A stretch of 63,893 bases of DNA, counting the filler, from Octopus bimaculoides (lineage: Eukaryota): the NCBI RefSeq assembly GCF_001194135.2. It is 5 parts of 4 records of this genome, joined end to end, with 100 filler letters (N's around TTAATTAATTAA, not from the genome) between each part and the next. Parts side by side here need not be neighbours in the genome. Positions count along the whole stretch, not along the records: positions 1 to 10,840 come from NC_068983.1; 4 more parts are not named here. One strand, given 5' to 3'. Made by a program: the position numbers and the translations under genes. Positions 1 through 17,904 of the stretch are shown here, piece after piece. Within the stretch, counting starts at the first letter, position 1. Each line of letters starts with the position of its first letter. The notes below the pieces were generated by a model. That model did no database searches, was not told the origin of the DNA, and saw only the letters and a program-made list of their open reading frames with translations.

Positions 1-41
<41 letters not shown>

Positions 42-254
42 CTGACAGACACACACACACACACACATACACACATCAGAATAAAACATATACCATCTCC
101 AAAGTCTGTCCAAGACATTTTTTTATTTACCGAACAATTCATCCATTCATTTTATTTGTGAATAGCGACTTTGAATATTGGCAAGATGCGCTTGTAATAA
201 GTCTGTGAAAAACATGTATAACAATAAATTGATTATTTTAAGTGTTGTACTTAC

Positions 255-368
255 AGACGTTACAGTAACGTCCAATATAACCAGGTCGGCATTTACACGA
301 GAATAGATGTCCCCTCCTACGACATACACCACCGTTCTTACAAGGACTACGGAGGCATGGATTAATCA
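255..368 (-). CDS. EGF-repeat secreted protein, exon 4: EGF-like domain 2 (INPCLRSPCKNGGVCRRRGHLFSCKCRPGYIGRYCNV); gene continues beyond the left edge
   Basis: Six-Cys EGF pattern. 114-nt phase 1-1 exon, acceptor tttttgttatgcag, donor gtaagt. Its EGF reading frame is not in the ORF track. Confidence 0.92.
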
Positions 369-1108
369 CTGCATAACAAAAAGCCATATTTTCCGGTTAT
401 TTTATATTTGTAATGGAGTTTTGATGATAAAAAACACACGCTGGCACTCAGATATACACATCTTTACATACTCAACACACATAATATATATATTTTTTTC
501 GCTTTATTGTATATTTGTTTCTTTTTGTATTTGCTCTCTGTTATTGATTTTCTATAAGATTGAAACCCAAGAAGTAAACATGCAGTAATAAGTTGTGCGG
601 AACAGAGTTTATTTTAGCGAGATACGCCTTATAACACCACATACAGAACTGACACGCACGTACCCCACAGAGTTAGCATATAAACAGCTTTCCAAACGCA
701 ACGAAAAACGTTTATACCAGGGATCATGTATGTATGGGAGTATTTCTATATACATATATGTATGTATGTATGTATGTGTGGGGGAATATATATATATATG
801 TGTCTGTCCCCCTCACATATGGTAACAGTGACTGTTAACTATTTTGGTATGCATGTGCAGCCATCTGTGTATGTGCATCTGAGCACACATGTATGTACTC
901 ATGTGTTTGTTTTTGTATTCATGTATATCTGTATATGGTAATGTATACATGCATATGCATGTATATATGAGTTTTTATGACTCTTTATATGTTTTTTCAT
1001 ATACTTTTTCTATATTTTTATATGCCTTATATTTTTATATTTTTTTATTTTTTATCTTTATTTTATATTTGTATGTAAATTTTGCAAACTTCATGAATTG
1101 AATTTTGT

Positions 1109-1244
1109 AAATCTCTGAAGAGGGCTAGTGAAGCATGCATGTACCTCCATTACATCATTTGCACCTACTAATTACTCCAGCGTACTGGAGTTATATAGAT
1201 AGAATGGGGCATGCCATGACTAGGCCGAAACAGCTGTAAGATTT
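1109..1244 (+). ncRNA. Type I hammerhead ribozyme motif with extended stem II (probably in a Penelope-like pLTR remnant)
   Basis: Stem I is AAATCT(1109-14)/AGATTT(1239-44). Core CTGAAGA at 1115-21. Stem II GGGCTAGT/ACTAGGCC has one G-G mismatch and is extended by GCATGC/GCATGC and an ACTCCAG/CTGGAGT hairpin. GAAA at 1227-30. Stem III is AC/GT with a palindromic AGCT loop. Cleavage triplet GUA (after 1238). AATAAA lies downstream near 1355. Confidence 0.8.
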
Positions 1245-1587
1245 TGTCCCTTCTCCAATTGCTAGATGTCCATTAAATTTGAAATCTTAATTGTTGATAT
1301 GACATGGTATGTCATAAGTGTCTGTATATTGTCATTTTTGTCATTTTGGCTATAAAATAAACAGATTAATCAACTGAATGTAGTGTCTGCAAGTTGATGA
1401 GTACCTCATATTCCCCTCCATTTTCTTATTGCTATATAAATTTAAGGTAAAACCCCCATTTCGCCCGCACCCACTTATTTCACTTGGTATAACACTAGTG
1501 TAACAATAATTGTGTACCCTCCCAGCAGTATATTGGATATATATTATCCCTTAGAGAGTTGGATCCTCAACTCCTAACTCTCTTGGA

Positions 1588-1625
<38 letters not shown>

Positions 1626-1734
1626 ACTATCAATATTTATATATATATGTATATATATATGTTTGTATTATGTATGTATGTATGTATGCATGTATATGTA
1701 TATGTATATATGTATATATGTATATATACAAGCA

Positions 1735-1798
<64 letters not shown>

Positions 1799-1811
1799 CA
1801 TACATACATGC

Positions 1812-1909
<98 letters not shown>

Positions 1910-2083
1910 GTTAAAATGGCACACGATCATTCTCCAAAACTTGCGCAAGACATGTTCATTTACCATGTCTTTCATCCATCCACCTAAGTATTCCTTATCC
2001 CTAATTGGATCTTACTATGTTATCTTTGCAGCAAATCAATGATAAATATATAAAGAGGATTTGTTTTGTAATGTTATACTTAC

Positions 2084-2209
2084 CAATTTGACACTGACGC
2101 CCAGTGTAACCAGGCCGGCATTTACATGCGAACACACGTCCTCTCCTGAAACATTGGCCACCGTTCTTACAAGGATTCCAGACGCATAGATTGAATACCG
2201 GGAAACTCT
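2084..2209 (-). CDS. EGF-repeat secreted protein, exon 3: EGF-like domain 1 (SFPVFNLCVWNPCKNGGQCFRRGRVFACKCRPGYTGRQCQI)
   Basis: Six-Cys EGF spacing with NPCxNGG and CxCxPGYxG motifs. 126-nt phase 1-1 exon, acceptor tttatacag, donor gtaagt. Confidence 0.93.
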
Positions 2210-2911
2210 CTGTATAAAGAATATAAAGGCATATTTTGCTGGGGTAATTTATATGCATTTACAAAGGAATATGTCTCCCATAACTTAGCGGTTCGGCAAG
2301 AGAGACCGACAGAATAAGTACTGGGCTTAAATAAGTAAAAGCCTAAGGATCGATTTCTTCGACTAAAACCCTTTAAGTCGGTGCTCCAGCATGGCCGCAG
2401 TCAAATGAGTGATTCAGGTAAAAAAAAAAAAACTAGCTGCAAGCATGGCTGTATGGTTAAGAACCTCCCTTTCCAACAACGTGGTTTTGAGTTCAGTCCC
2501 ACTGCGCGGCAACTTGAGAAAGTGTCTTCTACTTATAGCTCCGGGTCGATCAATGTGCCGTGAGTGAATTCAGTAGACGGAAATTGTGCGGAAGCCCGTC
2601 GAGCAGAAGTGGCTATGTGGTAAGAAGCTTCCTTCCCAGCCAAATAGTTCATGGTTGAGTCCCACTGCGTGACACTTTGGGCGAGTGTCTTCTACTATAG
2701 CCATGGGCCGACCAAAGCTTTGTGAGTGGATTTGGTACACGGAAACTGAAAAGAATCTCGTCGTCTAGCGGTTCGTCAAAAGAGGCCGATAGAATAAGTA
2801 CTAGGCTTACAAAGAATATGTCTTTAGGTCGATTTGTTCGACTAAAGGCGGTGCTCCAGCATGGCCGCAGTCAAAGGACTGAAACAAGTAAAGGGATAAA
2901 ACAATAAAATA

Positions 2912-2960
<49 letters not shown>

Positions 2961-3254
2961 ATTGTGTCTATGTTTGTCACAAACACACGCTAGCGTTTGA
3001 CAACCGGTCACGGTTTGGTTTTTGTTTCCGACTGAAACACTTCAAGACGGTGCCCCAGCATGGCCGCAGTCCAATTACTGAAACAACTAAAAGATTATAT
3101 AAACAAACAATGATTTGCGTAGTAATTCGATTCGTGGAATATTTTAAATTCAGAAAGTCTGCAGATCCCTCAATGTTTCTATTAAAGTCTTGGAGTAATG
3201 TGATTTATATCAAGTTAAAATTGTGTATAGTTTACATTAGATCTAATAACTTAC

Positions 3255-3293
3255 GTTTAGTTCCGCTTGTGCGCGTGAGTACCACGGCAATCA
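3255..3293 (-). CDS. EGF-repeat secreted protein, coding exon 2 (second half of signal peptide (V)IAVVLTRTSGTK)
   Basis: Strong acceptor ttttctcccttcctttcgtattaaatttcag, 39-nt phase 1-1 exon, donor gtaagt. Joined to exon 1 it completes a typical signal peptide with predicted cleavage after T-S-G. Confidence 0.8.
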
Positions 3294-3413
3294 CTGAAAT
3301 TTAATACGAAAGGAAGGGAGAAAATTAATTGTTTAATTAATAATAATAATAATAACGCCCACAACAATAATAATAATAATAATAGAAATAATAATAACAA
3401 CAACAATAATAAT

Positions 3414-3795
3414 AACCAGCAGATGACAACGTTTCTCTAAAATAAATGGAGAAACTTTCAAAATACAAAGATCTGGAAATAGTGGTAACTCGAATGTGGA
3501 ATCTAAAAACTGAAACAATTACTATCATAGTGGGTGCATTAGTTTAATGAAAAAAAATATTCAGACAAATACATAACAAAAACACCAGGACTTACAAATA
3601 TATATAGCATACAGAAAATTGCACTACTGGGCACTGCACACATCCTACGCAAAATACTTTCAATACAGTAACCATAAGAGCGTCACAGTAAACCACATCA
3701 CATACCCCAGGCACAAAGAGCTGCGCTCGGTAGTGAAGTGAAAGCACGCTATAAAAATAAAACTACTGAATAATAATAATAATAATAATAATAAT
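3414..3795 (+). mobile_element. 5'-truncated R4/Dong-like non-LTR retrotransposon 3' end (restriction-like endonuclease tail) embedded in (TAA)n
   Basis: Reads PADDNVSLK*MEKLSKYKDLEIVVTRMWNLKTETITIIVGAL..(frameshift)..IQKIALLGTAHILRKILSIQ* (stop 3669-3671), then a ~100-bp 3'UTR and a (TAA)n tail. (TAA/CAA)n also lies directly upstream. Confidence 0.8.
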
Positions 3796-4595
3796 GATTT
3801 CAAATTTTGGCACAAGGCCAGCAATTTCGGGGGAGGGGATGAGTCAAATATATCAAACCCAGTACTCAATAATAATAATAATAATAATAATCCTTTCTAT
3901 TAGAACTCATAACGTAAAGACTCTTTTCATCTCTAAGCATAAGGCCCGAAATTTTGGGGTCAGGGAGCCACTCGATTAGATCGACCTCAGTACGCAACTG
4001 GTACTTAATTTATCGAATTTGAACTCAGAACGTAGCGACGGGCGAAATACCGCTAAGCATTCTGCTGACGATTATGCCAGCTCGCTGCCTTACATAATAA
4101 TAATAATGATGATCATGATCATGATGATTTCAAATTGTTGCAACAAGAGCAGCTTGGGGGAGGGAATTAAGTCGATTACATTGACCCCGGTGCGTAACTG
4201 GTACTTATTTAATCTACCCCAAAAAAACTAAAGGTTAAGTCGACCTCGGCGGAATTTGATGTCAGAACGTAGCGAAATATAAACACATAAAACATCTAAG
4301 GGTATATTTTTTTCCCTCTGAAGATATTATGCTCAGGTCATATAAATTTAATATTTACTTAATATTTACCGAGTATTAATTGAAACAGCTGTAAGGGATG
4401 ATGGTTAATTTGCTGTTAATAATAAACAATTATTAACTTCCCAATCTCCATTTTCTTTTTCTTCTTTCACACACGCACATATATATATATATATAACTGG
4501 TCTATACGTGTTCCGATAAAATAGTCTGGACAGGCAGTCTGTCGGAGAAATGAGCCCCGCGAGGTGAAGTGGCTACTGCAGCGAGTGTTGCTGGC

Positions 4596-4676
4596 CAATC
4601 TCTGCGGCAACGCCATAACGGTCAATCTCTGCGGCAACGCCATAACGGTCAATCTCTGCGAAAGCGCCATAACGGT
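4596..4676. repeat. 27-bp tandem repeat x3 (CAATCTCTGCGGCAACGCCATAACGGT) in a CpG-rich island
   Basis: Units at 4596-4622 and 4623-4649 are identical; 4650-4676 has 3 mismatches. Confidence 0.95.
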
Positions 4677-5060
4677 CAGTACCGCGAGTTGCGGTTGAGC
4701 ATCCCACGTATTCTGGGATATGAAGCCCATCTTCCCCTCCATTTTCCGCTGTTGTATCCTACACACACACACACACACACACGCACACACACACACACAC
4801 ACGTTTTTCTCTTTTCATTTTGTTTCTTTTCTTTTCTCACCACTCTTCATTCCTGGTTGTGTCTGTGTAAATCTTTCAAAATCAACACTTCGAATAGACA
4901 ATACATAGTCTAACTGTAAGTTAATAGTTAAGAGTAAAAAGGAAAAAAAAGGAGTAGAAGGCGACGTTGAGGAAGCTGTAATGTAATGCAAACAGAAACC
5001 AAGGGTTTAGAGAGTAATTTGTTTCTCCCCTTTTTAAGAAAGAACTCATATCAGACTTAC

Positions 5061-5091
5061 CAATTAGGGTTAGAAAACACAAAGTTTTCAT
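5061..5091 (-). CDS. EGF-repeat secreted protein, coding exon 1 (start; first half of signal peptide MKTLCFLTLI)
   Basis: Minus strand reads ATCATGAAAACTTTGTGTTTTCTAACCCTAATTG|gtaagt, with A at -3 and an upstream in-frame TGA. The phase-1 donor GTAAGT is a perfect consensus. A possible acceptor at 5131-5132 would make the exon 5061-5130. Confidence 0.75.
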
Positions 5092-6298
5092 GATTATGCT
5101 GAGACAATGATGTTCAGCTAATCACCAAAACTATACATGCAATACAAAGGATACGACGATGGCATATATATATGAAAGATAGATCGGTTAATACATATGT
5201 AAATATATGTGTGTATACACACACATATACACACACATACATACATATATGCATATATGTATATATACGTATATATATATGTATATGTATACATATATAT
5301 GTATATGTATGTATATATAAATGTATATATATATATACACACGCACACACACTCATACACACACAAGCACTCGCACTCACCCATATGTACATGGACTGCC
5401 GTATTTTGTACACGCGGTTTCATTGGATAATTTTAATGGGAAATTTTCGTTGACCACGTGGTACGAAAAATGTGGGAGCAAAATCACCAGAACAACCACA
5501 TTATTAACAACAATAACAAACACAAATACAACAGCAATTCATGAAAGTAACATCAATAAACATATTAACATAACATCCTTTTGTTGACTAAATATTAACA
5601 TAATCAATTGATTGCTGGTTAACTTAATCTGCTTAATCTCCAGGTTTAAATGCAATATATTGTTTATTCCAATGTTCAGCTGGTTGTATAGAGAGAGAGA
5701 TGTATTCTGTAAATACATGGAGGATTATGTCCTTATCATGTATCTAATATTGGTTTCAAATTTTGGCACAACACCAGCAAGCTCGGGGGAAGGAGTAAGT
5801 CGATTACATCGACCCAATTGCTCAACTGGTACTTAGTTTAACGACCCCGAAAAAAATTAAAGGCAAAGTCAACTTGGTTTGAATTTGAACTTATGACGTA
5901 AAGACGGACGAAATGCCGCGAAGCATTTTGCCCGATGTGCTCCCGATTCTGCCAGCTCGCCGCCTAATCGACTATCTAATATTTCCATAACATTTTTTCA
6001 TTCTTTTATCTTTTACTACTTTCAGTCATTAGACTGCGGCCATACCGGAGCATTACCTTCAAGAATTTCTTTTAGTCAAATGACTCGACCCTATTATTTT
6101 TCTGAAGACTGGTATTCATTCTACCGGTCTCTTTTGCCAAACCGCTAGGTTTGAGTGAACACATAGAAAGATGTGCGGGTAATCTCCAACCAAACTTCAT
6201 GGTTTTCCCCATCTACCAGTGCAAGTAAACAATTTCTGCACAAGAACGATTAAATAAAGGAAATATATTTATCGAAAAATACAAAACACGCCAGAATA

Positions 6299-6735
6299 TT
6301 TACATTATTTCCATTTGACGGATATTCGTCCTAAGCTTGTTTCTTGTTAACACAACGTTTCCGCTGATATACCCTCCAGCCTTCATCAGGTGTCTTGGGA
6401 AAATTTCATCAGGTGTCTTGGGGAAACGATGTTTTAACAACAAACAAGATGAGAACAAATATCCGTCAAATGTAAATAATGTAAATAATGTACATAATTC
6501 CTCATCTCTTAAATATAGAACTGTATTATCTAATCGGTACGGAGCCGACATTAGACTTCAATGGAGACATATAGAGAAACTCCAACAAAAACTAATGAGA
6601 ACCCAGGTTCGAAATTTCCCCAAGACACCTGATGAAGGCTGGATGGTATATCAGCCGAAATGTTGTGTTAACAACAAACAAGTTGATGACAAATATCCGT
6701 CAAATGTAAATAATGTAAATAATGTAAATCGACCT
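6299..6735. mobile_element. Penelope-like (PLE) pLTR-derived repeat cluster: inverted copy, forward tail, ORF-start remnant, forward copy
   Basis: Minus copy 6299-6424, plus tail 6425-6524, RYGADIRLQWRHIEKLQQKL fragment 6525-6595, plus copy 6596-6730. The unit carries an HHR core. Confidence 0.75.
6625..6668 (+). ncRNA. Minimal hammerhead ribozyme motif (best-preserved copy of the family)
   Basis: ACAC-CTGATGA-A-GGCTG(gatggtatat)CAGCC-GAAA-TG-T-T-GTGT: stem I ACAC/GTGT, stem II GGCTG/CAGCC, vestigial stem III (A(C/T)GT). Confidence 0.65.
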
Positions 6736-7754: not shown

Positions 7755-8015
7755 TGATTTTATTTATTTATGCGCCCTTTTTCAAGCCTAGCCAGGCTCA
7801 TGGGCCTGGTTTCCCGGTTTCTATGGCGTATGTGTTCCCCCCACCTGGACGGGACGCCAGTCCATCGCAGCGTTACTCAAGAAACAGGAAGAAAGAGTGA
7901 GAGAAAGTTGGGGTGAAAGAGTACAACAGGGATCGCTACCACCCCCTGTCGGAACCTCGTGAAGCTTTAAGTGTTTTCGCTCAATAAATACACACAATGC
8001 CCGGTCTGGGCGTTG
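7755..8015 (-). mobile_element. Old SINE fragment with L2/CR1-type tail motif
   Basis: CCTGGACGGGACGCCAGTCCATCGCAG resembles tails of L2-mobilised SINEs (recalled family knowledge). Single copy here. Confidence 0.4.
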
Positions 8016-8673
8016 GCATTTTGGGAAAGTGTCTTCTACTATAGCTTCGGGCCAACCAAAGCTTTGTGAGTGGATTTGGTAGACGGAAACTGAAAGAAAC
8101 CTGTCGTATATANNNNNNNNNNNNNNNNNNNNNNNNNNNNNNNNNNNNNNNNNNNNNNNNNNNNNNNNNNNNNNNNNNNNNNNNNNNNNNNNNNNNNNNN
8201 NNNNNNNNNNNNNNNNNNNNNNNNNNNNNNNNNNNNNNNNNNNNNNNNNNNNNNNNNNNNNNNNNNNNNNNNNNNNNNNNNNNNNNNNNNNNNNNNNNNN
8301 NNNNNNNNNNNNNNNNNNNNNNNNNNNNNNNNNNNNNNNNNNNNNNNNNNNNNNNNNNNNNNNNNNNNNNNNNNNNNNNNNNNNNNNNNNNNNNNNNNNN
8401 NNNNNNNNNNNNNNNNNNNNNNNNNNNNNNNNNNNNNNNNNNNNNNNNNNNNNNNNNNNNNNNNNNNNNNNNNNNNNNNNNNNNNNNNNNNNNNNNNNNN
8501 NNNNNNNNNNNNNNNNNNNNNNNNNNNNNNNNNNNNNNNNNNNNNNNNNNNNNNNNNNNNNNNNNNNNNNNNNNNNNNNNNNNNNNNNNNNNNNNNNNNN
8601 NNNNNNNNNNNNNNNNNNNNNNNNNNNNNNNNNNNNNNNNNNNNNNNNNNNNNNNNNNNNNNNNNNNNNNNNC

Positions 8674-9345
8674 AGAATCGTTAGCACGCCGGGCGAAATG
8701 CTTAGCGGTATTTCGTCTGCCGTTACGTTCTGAGTTCAAATTCCGCCGAGGTCGACTTTGCCTTTCATCTTTTCGGGGGTCGATAAATTAAGTACCAGTT
8801 ACGCACTGCGGTCGGTGTAATCGACTTAATCCCTTTGTCTGTCCTTGTTTGTCCCCTCTATGTTTACCCCCTTGTGGGCAATAAAGAAATAAGAATCGTT
8901 AGCACGCCGGGCGAAATGCTTAGCGGTATTTCATCTGCCGTTACGTTCTGAGTTCAAATTCCGCTGAGGTCGACTTTGCCTTTCATCCTTTCGAGGTCGA
9001 TTAAATAAGTTCCAGTTACGCAATAGGGTCGGTGTAATCGACTTAATCCGTTTGTCTGTCCTTGTTTGTCTTCTCTATGTTTAGATCCCTGTGGGCAATA
9101 AAGAAATAAATATTTTATTATTCTTCAGGCGGTGAGATGGCAGAATCGTTAGTGCGCTGGACAAAATTCTTAGTGACATTTCATCGTCTTTGCGTTTTGG
9201 GTTCAAATTCCGCCAAGGTCGATTCTGCCTTTCGTTCTTTCGGGGTCGATAAATTAAGTACCAATGGAGTACTTGGGTCGATGTAATCGACTGGCCCCCA
9301 CCACCACCACAAAATTTTCAAGCCTTGTGTCTTCAGTAGAAAGGA
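8674..9345 (+). mobile_element. SINE family A (tRNA-like head), three adjacent copies (8674-8892, 8893-9109, 9128-9345)
   Basis: A-box-like TGGCAGAATCGTTAG, B-box-like GAGTTCAAATT, body GCCTTTCATCCTTTCGGGGTCGATAAATTAAGTACCAG. More than 20 further copies are scattered (e.g. 3895-4095-, 5750-5965-, 19510-19740-, 27880-28085+, 30290-30495-, 35825-36060-, 42430-42880-, 43730-43940+, 55210-55640+). Confidence 0.85.
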
Positions 9346-10720
9346 TTATTATTCCTTCGTAACACAGTGTAGGTAAAAATGCACCGGAGTCTTTAGTCAT
9401 GTGTCAAGTCACAAGGACCTCAGACAGATAATACTTTCCCTAAGATTTGTGTTGTGCCCAATAAGGCTGCTTTTTGCAAGACATCAATCGTGCACAGGAT
9501 TCCCACCCAGTTGCCTTAAGAAGTCTTAAAGTTTCAATGGAATTGAGCCCAGCGCTCCGATCACCACTGGTATCATTTCTAAATTACCCTCTCGCACTCC
9601 ATACAGTCTTGCCATTTCCACTTTCAATTCGGGGTATTTGATGATTTTTCAACCTCTTTACTCACAACATTCATGTCATTTGGTATGGCTACATCAATGA
9701 TCTGACAGTATTTGTCTCTCTTATTCAATATGACAATATGCGGCCGACGGTGTTCGATTACACGATCCGTCTGAAAATAAAAGTCCTAGAGTATCGTTGC
9801 TTTTACATCATCCTGCATAACTTTACTTGGTACATGCTCATACCAGTTCTCTGTTCACATTTTCCACACTCTTTCCACAGACTCTGCATTTCTGAGCGTC
9901 AGAAGTTTTATAAATGTTATACTTCACTGAATTGGTAGCGAGAGCCTGGTCTTGTGCAGACTTTCGGTGGTACGCTTCAAATCACCTCGCTCAAGCCATG
10001 CCCACAACGCTGCTTTATCCTTAACATCCTCTGCATTCCTTTCAAATTGTCCATGCATTCTCATTTCACGGTCTTTTTTCTCTTCTCCTCAGCTCTTTAG
10101 TTAAACTCTTCTTTGCCCATCATTTCAACTGCATTTGCAGCCTTATCTTTCGTGGTATTTTTCAGCAGGTCTTCATCACTATTTATCAAACACTCGGCAG
10201 GCGTTCTCCTTTCACTCCTTATACAATGATCTATACTAATTAGTCCTCTGCCACCATTCTTTTTTTTTTTTTTTTTTCATATACTGTCTGTTTACGTTTG
10301 CTTTAGGGTGTAGCGCCCCATGCAGCGTCATCAACTTTCTCGTCCTTCTATCCAGTGTTGATGTTTCCTCTTTAGTCCATTTGAGGATGGATGCACTATA
10401 TCTGACCAGCACAATTGCCCAAATATTCATTGCGGTAATCAAATTTTTGGCATTGAGGTTGGATTTCAACACCATCTTCACCCTTTTTTGATACGCCTCT
10501 CTAAACTTGACTTTCATTTCTCTGTGTAGAATGTCATCCAGCTCCAAAATCCCTAAATATCTATACCCGCTACCGTCGGGTTCACCCATGGTCTCTCCTG
10601 ATGGTAACCGCAATCCTCTGCAGGCTGCTTTCTTCCCTCTTTTCATATTAAGTGCTGAGCATTAGGTAATCCCAAATTCCATACCGATGTCCCTACCACA
10701 ATTCTGAACTGTTTTGGTTA
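9345..10720 (-). mobile_element. Degenerate R4/Dong-clade non-LTR retrotransposon (RT C-terminus to RLE endonuclease, 3'UTR)
   Basis: Minus-strand peptides: DIGMEFGI, YRYLGILE, LNAKNLITAMNIWAIVLVRYSA, LDRRTRKLMTLHGALHPKA, GRGL, MHGQF, AQDQAL, CRVCGK, RPHIVILNK, IIDVAIPND, IPVVIGALG, LQKAALLGTTQILGKVL*. Contains frameshifts and stops. Confidence 0.9.
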
Positions 10721-10840
10721 AGGAACGAGTCACCTTGGAAGAGTCTCCTTTTAATATTAACTTCTCCAAGGAATACATTACTTGAGTACAATTTGGTTTT
10801 CCACTTTTTCATGCTAAGCATCAAAAAATTTGTGATGTTG

Positions 10841-16852: not shown

Positions 16853-17904
16853 AAAAACAAAGAAAAACTAGAATTATTTTAGTTTTGAAGTTTAGTGTGT
16901 GTGTGTGAAGATGTGATTTTGAGAGATTGTTAGGAACATAATAGTGTCGATGATGAAATATTGCACCTGAAGATGGTTGGAGAAAAGACCAATTAAATAC
17001 AGTATAAATCTTAAACATGAGAGTAGATGATTTTAATAGCCTAATAATTCATACTATTTTAACAGATTTATGCTCTATTGTTTTTTTTTTTTAGACTAAT
17101 GAAGTGGTCCTCTGGTTTTTCACAAATGGTGATTAATGAGAAGATAACCCAAGGGAAAAAAAAAGATTTTGGTTAAGATTTTGTACAAGATTTCACATTC
17201 TAAGAATCCTAATTGGACTGTGTTTGACTGAAGTGTTTTAAATATTGCTGTTAAGTGTCTGGGTGGATAAGGAAACCAAAATCATGGGTCCTAAGTTCAG
17301 TTCTTATTGTGTCTTATGTTTTGGTGATTTTCTGAATTCCTCTTCATTGATACAAAGTGCAGGAATGGCTGTGTGGCAGGAAGTTTGCTTATCCTCTGGT
17401 TTTGGTTTCAGTCCCACTGCATGGCACCTTGGGCAAATGTCTCTGAGCTGACCAAAGCCTCGTGAGTGGATTTGGTAGATGTTGTGTGTGTGTGTGTGTG
17501 TTACTGTCTCCTTGCCTTATATCATGTAATAGTTGTCACCATGATGCAAGCATTATCCTTCATTTCCAATCTTCTGTGGACATGTGTCTGGTCATGGGGA
17601 AATACATGGCATGGAAACAGAGAAGGATTAGTGACAGGAAAGGCATCCAGCTGTAGAAAATTTGCCCCAACAAATTCTGTCTGAGTCATGCAAGCACGAG
17701 AAAGTGGACATTTAAGCAATGATGGTATGCAATCACTCTTTGATCCATATATAGACTAATATTGTATACAGAGTAAGATGTCTTTCGTCAACTTAGCTTT
17801 ATCAAAACAAGTTGCGGGCCTATAGATTGTAGGGGTTTGTAAAAGGATTCAATTTTAAAATGCTAGATAATAGAGATAGAAATGTCTTCAAAATATATAT
17901 ACTT

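Follow-up and report, generated by a model that had tools for sequence, protein, structure and literature searches.

The EGF proteins of the mussel plaque and foot, Mfp-2 and PVFP-5, are basic and do not bind calcium. Among proteins with VWA or D domains, PTMP1 is a collagen-binding protein and collagen VI a matrix collagen that has a collagenous domain; FCGBP, MUC2 and MUC5AC are mucus proteins in which, as in VWF, the D-assembly unit mediates disulfide multimerisation and packing; matrilins oligomerise via a C-terminal coiled coil; and zonadhesin combines MAM domains, a mucin domain and several D domains with a transmembrane anchor. Repeated EGF-like domains recur in marine holdfast proteins, namely mfp2, sbp9, sfp3/4 and the octopus protein octovafibrin (PMC12817120; PMC10336842). 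Mfp-2 provides the plaque of mussels with its cohesive bulk, and PTMP1 belongs to the byssal matrix as a VWA protein (PMC12817120); octovafibrin (O. bimaculoides XP_014771937.1) is a secreted structural egg-tether protein with 29 tandem non-calcium EGFs held by disulfides (PMC10336842).

The stretch of Octopus bimaculoides DNA analysed here (63,893 nucleotides, filler included; the window) matches chromosome CM046603.1 at 100% identity and holds the 5' end of a gene already predicted in RefSeq. The four small exons from which an earlier note on this DNA had assembled a protein are in fact no more than exons 1-4 of a 30-exon gene, which spans 80.6 kb and encodes at least 1545 aa. The four minus-strand exons themselves are real: the donors are GTAAGT at 4/4 exons, the acceptors are pyrimidine-rich and end in CAG at 3/3, and every junction among exons 1-4 is in phase 1. 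The junctions proposed in that note coincide exactly with the ones in two RefSeq models, XP_014776970.1 (927 aa, "neurogenic locus notch homolog protein 2-like") and a newer model of 1545 aa named "protein 1" in place of "protein 2", and the first 103 residues of both are identical (100%) to the product of exons 1-4.

Exon 1 (5061..5091, minus strand, 31 nt) begins with the ATG at 5091, which has an A at -3 and is the annotated CDS start (position 10001 of the gene-locus sequence), and carries 10 1/3 signal-peptide codons, encoding MKTLCFLTLI and supplying the G of the next codon. Exon 2 (3255..3293, minus strand, 39 nt, phase 1-1, acceptor tttcag, donor GTAAGT), the same in XP_014776970.1 and the newer model, supplies the remainder of the signal peptide together with the predicted cleavage region (VIAVVLTRTSG, then TK after the cut); exon 3 (2084..2209, minus strand, 126 nt, phase 1-1) encodes the short linker QSFPVFNL and EGF1; and exon 4 (255..368, minus strand, 114 nt, phase 1-1) encodes EGF2. 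Since exon 4 closes with a splice donor, the reading frame runs on beyond the left edge of the window. The spliced product, MKTLCFLTLIVIAVVLTRTSGTKQSFPVFNLCVWNPCKNGGQCFRRGRVFACKCRPGYTGRQCQIVINPCLRSPCKNGGVCRRRGHLFSCKCRPGYIGRYCNV, consists of a signal peptide and two EGF domains, as the earlier note had proposed, and a six-frame scan of the window returned no EGF modules beyond these two.

The introns are rich in repeats. Intron 1 (3294..5060, minus strand, 1767 nt) contains microsatellites, a 27-bp minisatellite in three copies and SINE-like repeats; intron 2 (2210..3254, minus strand, 1045 nt) carries a SINE-like element three times, along with a (TG)n run; and intron 3 (369..2083, minus strand, 1715 nt) has long TATA/GATA microsatellites. 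Of intron 4 the window takes in the first 254 nt (1..254, minus strand), which start with the GTAAGT donor at 254, and the EGF3 exon lies outside the window, about 2.1 kb downstream (16930-17040 of the gene-locus sequence). Window positions 5-566 are 88-93% identical to the two exon-plus-intron units that follow; the EGF2 exon shares 108/111 nt with each of the next two EGF exons, also outside the window, and identity is 97% among the EGF2, EGF3 and EGF4 exons, with their flanking introns at 71-95%. EGF2 and EGF1 share 74% of nucleotides and 62% of amino acids, with a likeness that ends at the exon borders and a dN/dS of about 0.4. We read these patterns of exon similarity as favouring constraint, and the array may have grown through recent duplication, in tandem, of exons that each encode one EGF.

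Signal-peptide cleavage is predicted between G21 and T22 from the -3/-1 rule together with a hydropathy scan, whose maximum at residues 3-21 is the sole hydrophobic stretch in the protein. The 82 mature residues encoded by exons 1-4 comprise 11 R, 5 K and 12 C with 0 D and 0 E, for a calculated pI of 10.0. Both EGF1 (CVWNPCKNGGQCFRRGRVFACKCRPGYTGRQC, net +7) and EGF2 (CLRSPCKNGGVCRRRGHLFSCKCRPGYIGRYC, net +8) have the six-cysteine pattern and no D/E; Pfam recognises EGF in the exon 1-4 product (E=3e-14), with a match at residues 32-61 in EGF1, while EGF_CA, at 12.6 bits, falls short of its cut-off of 27 and the PROSITE-style cbEGF pattern is not found. The description of the tandem EGFs as cationic, acid-free and not calcium-binding was correct. 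Their charge is far from typical: net charge averages -0.68 over a background of 5059 EGF domains, drawn from about 260 other proteins with multiple EGFs, and just 9 of these domains (0.18%) reach +7. The motif CRPGYTGRQC in EGF1 fits, as a pattern match only, C5-xxGx[ST]Gxx-C6, which we take to be the O-GlcNAc (EOGT) consensus.

In the RefSeq models 26 more exons follow in frame, and the exon map assigns one EGF to each phase 1-1 EGF exon among the 30. The 1545-aa order is signal peptide, 5 cationic EGFs, VWA, 12 cationic EGFs, VWA, 4 near-neutral EGFs and VWD-C8-TIL, and Pfam on the full model gives EGF x21, VWA x2 (4.8e-95) and VWD (4.9e-21). The 17 cationic EGFs form two arrays with a net charge of +139 and 3 acidic residues in 645 aa (EGF1-5: 30 R, 11 K, 0 D/E; EGF6-17: 68 R, 33 K, 3 D/E); Tyr is modest at 2 per EGF, the charge comes mainly from Arg, and the full mature protein has a net charge of +180 and a pI of 9.65. 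A pattern search found no calcium-binding EGF in the full protein, and by hydropathy the full model has no transmembrane segment, the N-terminal signal peptide being its only hydrophobic segment. The product is predicted to be secreted, as had been proposed, and the downstream exons, where a transmembrane or receptor architecture might have appeared, show a large secreted matrix-type one. The O. bimaculoides model is 3'-incomplete: its last exon comes after a 23.5-kb intron, and the locus carries 23.7 kb of N. The literature searched does not mention the accession or the LOC ids of the orthologues.

Both VWA domains have the DxSxS MIDAS motif. Per domain, VWA1 is closest to Mytilus PTMP1 (4cn8, 76-81 bits) and to collagen VI alpha3, the collagen VI VWA matches scoring 60-68 bits per domain. 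The C-terminal tail can be aligned over its whole length (residues 4-321) to the D assemblies of FCGBP (8rde), MUC2, MUC5AC and VWF. Pfam makes no C8 call in the protein; we infer a C8 from the alignment to these solved D assemblies and from a 33%-identical relative that carries one. The GDPH autocleavage motif typical of many mucus VWD domains is absent. In orthologues two PAN/apple domains follow, and the O. sinensis tail gives Pfam matches to TIL (2.2e-6) and PAN_1 x2 (6e-12). The gene has orthologues or paralogues in O. sinensis, O. vulgaris and Argonauta hians, and the O. vulgaris locus keeps at least 16 in-frame cationic EGF exons. The earlier view of the protein as lineage-specific holds only loosely: outside octopods a patchy search returned just domain-level similarity, while within them it has these relatives.

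From this architecture we suggest, with somewhat better than even confidence, that the protein is secreted, forms multimers and acts as a scaffold with affinity for polyanions and matrix, serving as a cohesive component of glue, mucus or egg cement. Once exported, it would act as an extracellular scaffold or cross-linker. Its rigid, disulfide-locked EGF rods, with about +139 carried mostly by arginine guanidinium, could bind polyanions electrostatically, the candidates being sulfated or acidic mucopolysaccharides, mucins and conditioned surfaces; the two MIDAS-intact VWA domains could dock onto fibrous matrix partners; and the C-terminal D assembly, with PAN where present, may provide disulfide-linked multimerisation or binding to mucus or matrix proteins, as in VWF, MUC2 and FCGBP, so that the whole would be a cohesive part of a secreted glue, mucus or egg cement. 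The idea of an adhesive, mucus or egg-coat protein in the earlier note appears to agree with the architecture of the whole protein and with its closest relatives of solved structure, PTMP1, PVFP-5, FCGBP and MUC2. Among solved structures the best single-EGF match is PVFP-5, a mussel adhesive, at about 40 bits (40-45 bits, E about 1e-10), with which an isolated Notch1 EGF ties at 39 bits, so the EGF sequence alone does not point to adhesives in particular.

The high positive charge would also suit an antimicrobial or agglutinating role. A giant, mucus-anchored antimicrobial, in which an Arg-rich cationic array tethered by the D assembly binds or agglutinates anionic microbial surfaces, would draw on the extreme, acid-free charge, on the similarity of the tail to FCGBP, MUC2 and MUC5AC above all, and on the PAN domains of the orthologues; we consider it unlikely, as the VWA domains resemble those of matrix or collagen-binding proteins (collagen VI and PTMP1), the long rigid EGF rods appear structural rather than microbicidal, and the EGF fold is not known to serve as an antimicrobial scaffold. 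A reproductive role, whether in zonadhesin-type egg-envelope or sperm-egg adhesion or as a part of the chorion or stalk beside octovafibrin, seems quite unlikely. In its favour, automated naming labels paralogues from O. bimaculoides, O. sinensis and O. vulgaris "zonadhesin-like", and the egg cases of O. bimaculoides are made of a tandem-EGF protein, with an uncharacterised green cement fixing them in place (PMC10336842). A ZAN-annotated transcript also rises in the oviducal gland of O. maya at fertilisation (PMC8976471), but it cannot be linked to this gene. Unlike zonadhesin, moreover, the octopus protein has one D assembly, no MAM match and no transmembrane segment, and the egg-thread study extracted one major protein, the 135-kDa octovafibrin, with which the thread amino-acid composition agrees (PMC10336842).

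Two further readings can be set against the secreted scaffold that we prefer. Seen in the window alone, a signal peptide and two EGFs would suit a small stand-alone secreted peptide of two or a few EGFs, such as a short adhesive or the EGF-fold toxin that had also been raised. This is highly improbable: exon 4 finishes in a consensus phase-1 donor with no stop, the RefSeq models continue in frame, the next units are tandem copies of the exon and its intron, and the toxin idea in particular is very unlikely because the gene encodes a multidomain protein that combines 21 EGFs, 2 VWA and VWD-C8-TIL in at least 1545 aa. A true Notch-pathway receptor or DSL ligand has the database name on its side, a Notch- or fibropellin-like label that the earlier note had foreseen, and the top whole-sequence PDB scores fall on the EGF arrays of DLL1 and Notch1; these high scores, however, add up from numerous generic EGF matches. 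Notch, Delta and ZP hallmarks are absent from the full model, and Pfam finds no LNR (PF00066), NOD/NODP, ankyrin, DSL (PF01414) or MNNL (PF07657) match in the protein, whereas true Notch and Jagged matches in the same search do carry Notch/DSL domains. With no Notch/DSL domains, transmembrane segment or calcium-binding EGF, we reject this reading on architecture as barely conceivable; the "neurogenic locus notch homolog" names are misnomers.

Like Mfp-2 and Perna viridis PVFP-5 (PDB 7qab), the octopus protein is secreted and built of tandem EGF modules, PVFP-5 standing for the mussel EGF proteins in the sequence comparison and Mfp-2 being likened by description only; it is much larger, carries two VWA domains and a D assembly besides its EGFs, and has an Arg-dominated charge and modest Tyr, with similarity at the domain level only. 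Its closest solved VWA relatives, PTMP1 and the N-terminal VWA of collagen VI, share the conserved MIDAS but lack cationic EGF arrays and a D assembly, PTMP1 consisting of two VWA domains only. The C-terminal 320 aa match the VWD-C8-TIL units of FCGBP, MUC2, MUC5AC and VWF end to end; compared with these mucus and haemostasis proteins, the octopus protein has a single D assembly, no PTS mucin domain and no GDPH. The VWA-EGF(n)-VWA core of matrilins, which are extracellular adaptors, recurs here, and a Branchiostoma "matrilin-2-like" protein with VWA, EGF, VWD, C8 and TIL is among the matches; unlike matrilins, the octopus protein has a D assembly at its C-terminus, with PAN or without, and its EGFs are far more numerous and cationic.

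Octovafibrin shares species, secretion and tandem non-calcium EGFs with the present protein but is the product of a different gene, with 29 EGFs between two C-type lectin domains and no VWA or VWD; its published description does not present it as cationic, and D or N is frequent at position 3 of its EGFs (PMC10336842). The molluscan EGFZP/EGFL shell-matrix proteins, a family reported in cephalopods (PMC9290575), likewise begin with a signal peptide and then two EGF exons, but EGFZP goes on to a ZP domain and a transmembrane segment, both absent from the octopus gene. After the octopus protein itself, the top per-EGF profile score (38 bits per EGF) belongs to a soft coral "Notch-like" protein, Xenia sp. 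XP_046863735.1, which has seven consecutive acid-free, Lys/Arg-rich EGFs with a mean net charge of +7.7; its flanks differ, with Cys/Trp-rich repeats and no VWA or VWD, and its likeness to the octopus cationic EGFs is probably convergence.

Assembled by script on the minus strand, four exons of the window reproduce exactly the gene model that the earlier note had proposed: E1 (5091..5061, 31 nt) and E2 (3293..3255, 39 nt), which encode the signal peptide, E3 (2209..2084, 126 nt), which encodes EGF1, and E4 (368..255, 114 nt), which encodes EGF2. All four have a GTAAGT donor, E2, E3 and E4 each follow a pyrimidine-rich CAG acceptor, and the junctions are in phase 1 throughout, the classical layout for shuffled EGF modules. 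Once spliced, the exons encode a hydrophobic leader of 21 residues and then TKQSFPVFNL-EGF1-QIVINP-EGF2-NV, so that EGF1 begins 10 residues past the signal peptide. The 82 residues after the leader, computed from the translation, comprise 11 Arg, 5 Lys and 12 Cys with no Asp and no Glu; the acid-free, Arg-rich character that the note had described is thus present in the window, and it extends well beyond it into the downstream EGFs. EGF domains of the PF00008 (hEGF) type show C-x-C spacing among six cysteines together with a G-[FY]-x-G motif. Pfam assigns the product to this class (E=3e-14, two domains), a six-frame cysteine-pattern scan of the 10.8 kb finds the six-Cys EGF pattern in E3 and E4 only, and both domains can be aligned with Notch and DLL1 EGFs of known structure. 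The note's claim that a Ca-binding EGF consensus is lacking also holds. That consensus pairs [DEQN]-x-[DEQN]2-C at the N-terminus with C-x-[DN]-x4-[FY]-x-C; EGF_CA scores 12.6 bits on the window product against a cut-off of 27, and a PS01187-style pattern for calcium-binding EGFs has no match across the whole of P0153, the newer O. bimaculoides model of the gene.

The DNA of EGF1 and EGF2 is 74% identical and the protein 62%; this likeness runs no further than 19 nt past the exon borders and, with a dN/dS of about 0.4, is the pattern expected of a duplicated coding exon under constraint. A pattern scan places the Asx-hydroxylation motif in EGF6 and EGF18-21 only, and not in EGF1 or EGF2 of the window. 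Between Cys5 and Cys6, EGF1 carries C-x-x-G-x-[ST]-G-x-x-C in the form CRPGYTGRQC, and EGF2 lacks it; by pattern match it is present in 12 of the cationic EGFs (P0153 residues 54-814). This motif corresponds to the consensus for extracellular O-GlcNAc addition by EOGT.

The gene was found by a profile search built from translations of the two EGF exons. Among 12,267 profile matches, one RefSeq model (P0008, XP_014776970.1, 927 aa) stood out at 43 bits per EGF with a match from residue 25, and its residues 1-103 are identical to the spliced product of the four exons. Its RefSeq name is 'PREDICTED: neurogenic locus notch homolog protein 2-like [Octopus bimaculoides]', and a search with it returned P0153, a 1545-aa model that shares its N-terminus. 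The P0153 locus (L002, CM046603.1:46170635-46271211) contains the window at 100% identity, and its annotated CDS start is the ATG at window 5091. P0153 maps there as 30 exons over 80.6 kb (gene extent 10001-90577 on L002), with a separate phase 1-1 exon (108-126 nt) for each EGF and one 564-nt exon for each VWA domain; by this exon map the window carries exons 1-4 and, from intron 4, the first 254 nt. Of the exons in P0153, P0008 lacks 12 that encode EGFs and the one that encodes the second VWA domain. These results show a real, intact gene, already predicted in RefSeq, that encodes a large secreted protein without a membrane anchor. Queried with the spliced 103 aa, a word-indexed protein search gave two generic EGF fragments only and did not recover the RefSeq protein that is 100% identical; with the 541-aa non-repetitive tail it gave only two matches, the query's own source protein not among them. 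No claim of absence here, such as the lack of a squid orthologue, rests on that search. No expression or protein evidence for the gene was found, and a literature search retrieved no paper mentioning XP_014776970.1 or the LOC identifiers of the orthologues.

Window positions 5-566 are 88-93% identical to the next two exon-plus-intron units, and the exons of EGF2, EGF3 and EGF4 are identical at 108/111 positions while their flanking introns are 71-95% identical. The pattern points to recent tandem duplication in which the exons have been held more alike than the introns. At the other end of the gene, the last exon of P0153 (L002 90482-90574) lies past a 23.5-kb intron, in a locus that holds 23.7 kb of N, and encodes a tail unlike that of the orthologues, standing in place of the PAN tail of O. 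sinensis, O. vulgaris and Argonauta. It is probably spurious and the 3' end wrong, which would leave the P0153 model 3'-incomplete.

Pfam identifies 21 EGF, two VWA (4.8e-95) and one VWD (4.9e-21) domains in P0153, in the order signal peptide, EGF1-5, VWA1, EGF6-17, VWA2, EGF18-21 and a VWD-C8-TIL tail. Both VWA domains keep the DxSxS MIDAS motif as DESGS (at 231 and 867), and the T and D metal-site positions are conserved in an alignment with mussel proximal thread matrix protein 1 (PTMP1), so that these are VWA domains with a MIDAS whose metal site is predicted from sequence. The nearest relative of VWA1, per domain, is PTMP1 itself (76-81 bits), with collagen VI alpha3 next. Over residues 4-321, the tail can be aligned to the whole D assemblies (VWD-C8-TIL) of FCGBP, MUC2, MUC5AC and VWF, consistent with a contiguous VWD, C8 and TIL in which C8 is assigned from the alignment, being uncalled by Pfam alone; the O. 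sinensis orthologue tail has a TIL match at 2.2e-6 (above the cut-off) and two PAN_1 at 6e-12. A GDPH motif is absent from P0153 by pattern scan. The folds are defined by these profile matches and by sequence matches to PDB entries. In a Kyte-Doolittle scan of the full model the signal peptide is the sole hydrophobic segment. Secretion, cationic character and a Notch-like automated name were all anticipated by the earlier note, and all three stand; a narrower reading as a small protein or toxin does not, since the exon map and the architecture (30 exons, at least 1500 aa) exclude a stand-alone EGF peptide.

The charge of the array is extreme. EGF1-5 contain 30 Arg and 11 Lys with no Asp or Glu, EGF6-17 contain 68 Arg and 33 Lys with 3 Asp/Glu, and these 17 EGFs carry a net charge of +5 to +10 each, +139 in total, giving the cationic arrays a pI of about 10; the last four EGFs are near-neutral. 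For the mature protein the computed net charge is +180 and the pI 9.65. By comparison, net charge averages -0.68 over 5059 EGF domains drawn from the other multi-EGF proteins that scored best, and just 0.18% of these domains are at +7 or above.

Searches with P0008 recovered relatives in O. sinensis (LOC115209189, 81%), O. vulgaris (85%) and Argonauta hians (48%), together with several octopus paralogues, some of them labelled 'zonadhesin-like'. Cationic EGFs are also found in an O. sinensis paralogue whose N-terminal domain differs, and another paralogue has neutral or acidic ones. The O. vulgaris locus contains at least 16 in-frame exons of the cationic EGF type, e.g. NPCHSRPCKNGGVCIGRGRSFSCKCRPGYSGRNC; the piece of that locus retrieved (L003, on OX597816.1) stops short of exons orthologous to exons 1-4, and no signal-peptide match was found in it. 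As annotated, two orthologue models (P0154 and P0155), of O. sinensis (LOC115209189 isoform X2) and O. vulgaris, have N-termini made up of repeats like LIHAIADLARTVAYVLEEDGASAVNADLDIADETVMH, which result from translating the cationic EGF exons in the +1 frame (L003, 483-24317). The wrong frame remains open because the EGF exons are all symmetric, phase 1-1. This frame error makes an Arg-rich array look acidic, and both orthologue models need re-annotation.

Short interspersed repeats crowd the introns and 5' flank of the gene (window 2286-2423, 2458-2533, 2621-2758, 2766-2893, 3029-3092, 3957-4232, 5745-5860 and 8014-8102), and a ~220-bp unit in tandem at 8673-9348 recurs many times, at 82-92% identity, in the O. 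bimaculoides and O. vulgaris loci. Intron 1 holds a 27-bp minisatellite, CAATCTCTGCGGCAACGCCATAACGGT (4596-4678; 3.1 copies, 94% match), in a locally GC-richer stretch adjoining an (AC)21 run. An inverted repeat with 111-nt arms (6297-6407 and 6611-6721; 91% complementary, 203 nt apart) lies ~1.2-1.6 kb upstream of the start codon, overlaps a direct repeat (D12) and (AATGTAAAT)n runs, and could be a MITE-like element or a hairpin. The 560-bp run of N at 8113-8672 is an assembly gap inside the genomic piece, and ORFs spanning it are artefacts. Upstream of the gene, 9400-10840 is a decayed minus-strand coding region with stops and frameshifts (ORF 10236-10646) and a poly(A)-like end, AAAAAAAAAAAAAAA, near 10270; its likeness to the 3' half of a non-LTR retrotransposon ORF2 (...LFQGDS..., ...YRYLGI...) stays a guess since Pfam gives no match in the region. 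ARAGORN and Rfam scans of the window found no tRNA or other match.

From these domains we infer a role as an extracellular scaffold or cross-linker, in which the polycationic EGF rods would attach to polyanions and the VWA domains with their MIDAS to fibrous partners in the matrix; the D assembly, together with the PAN domains that the orthologues have, would serve for multimerisation or for binding to other proteins of mucus or matrix. Octopus skin mucus is enriched in VWD proteins (PMC10138644), and O. bimaculoides egg clusters are fixed by a green cement that is uncharacterised (PMC10336842), a speculative home for the polycation. Tentatively, the octopod family may be an arginine-based underwater cohesive and a major component of a so far uncharacterised octopus secretion such as the green egg cement or sucker or skin adhesive mucus, its guanidinium-rich, acid-free EGF rods coacervating with acidic mucopolysaccharides and its VWA domains and D assembly locking the network; if so, the design would differ from that of mussel foot proteins with their Lys/DOPA chemistry. 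The protein might instead serve as an antimicrobial or agglutinin tethered in mucus, which we regard as unlikely. A reproductive function, zonadhesin-like or in the egg coat, seems quite improbable; zonadhesin combines MAM domains with a mucin-like domain, several D domains and a TM segment at the C-terminus, and here there is one VWD, no MAM and no TM. What makes the gene notable beyond these readings is its Arg-based charge, the misleading Notch name in RefSeq and the faulty orthologue models; because of the misnaming and the wrong frame, proteomics and transcriptomics of octopus secretions would miss or mislabel the protein. It overturns no concept, and gives bioadhesion and mucus researchers a concrete candidate and annotators a name and models to repair.

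Two further readings are excluded by the architecture, a component of the Notch pathway and a shell-matrix protein of the EGFZP type. In P0008 and P0153, Pfam finds none of the Notch, Delta/Jagged or ZP hallmark families: LNR, NOD/NODP and the ankyrin repeats that Notch receptors carry intracellularly are absent, as are PF01414 and PF07657, the DSL and MNNL domains that precede the EGFs in DSL ligands, and there is no TM segment. True Notch proteins among the matches to P0008 carry PF00066, PF06816, PF07684 and PF12796. EGFZP and EGFL have a ZP domain or ZP-like 8-Cys region after two EGFs, with a TM segment in EGFZP (PMC9290575), and the EGFZP reading is rejected because ZP and TM are both absent. 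Octovafibrin (XP_014771937.1), the O. bimaculoides egg-tether protein, has N- and C-terminal C-type lectin domains around 29 EGFs (PMC10336842), whereas the gene described here has a different accession (XP_014776970.1) and no Lectin_C match in Pfam; P0047 (1208 aa, 28 EGFs), considered as an octovafibrin candidate, is an unrelated TM protein. Matrilins carry a coiled coil for oligomerisation at the C-terminus, after VWA-EGF-VWA; the C-terminus here is VWD-C8-TIL, with PAN domains added in the orthologues.

Outside the octopods, only one protein of the sampled set has a comparable array of cationic EGFs, a soft coral protein that is likewise auto-named Notch-like (P0055, Xenia sp. XP_046863735.1): between Cys/Trp-rich repeats lie seven acid-free, Lys/Arg-rich EGFs in a row (mean net +7.7). 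The comparison suggests convergence. With Mfp-2 type adhesives the octopus protein shares a secreted, basic, tandem-EGF design, here with 17 cationic EGFs behind a signal peptide. Conversion of Tyr to DOPA and a place in an adhesive plaque also mark that type of adhesive, and each EGF here has two conserved Tyr. In comparisons of single EGFs, PVFP-5 scores 40 bits and an isolated Notch1 EGF 39. Tandem EGFs occur in the holdfast proteins mfp2, sbp9, sea-star sfp3/4 and octopus octovafibrin, and VWA in PTMP1 (PMC12817120), and the predicted EGF/VWA/VWD module set matches this literature on marine holdfasts and mucus. Joining three modules recurrent there (tandem EGF, VWA and a VWD D assembly) in a protein of at least 1500 aa, the octopus gene is a new, uncharacterised member of the modular secreted EGF/VWA/VWD matrix-adhesive class.
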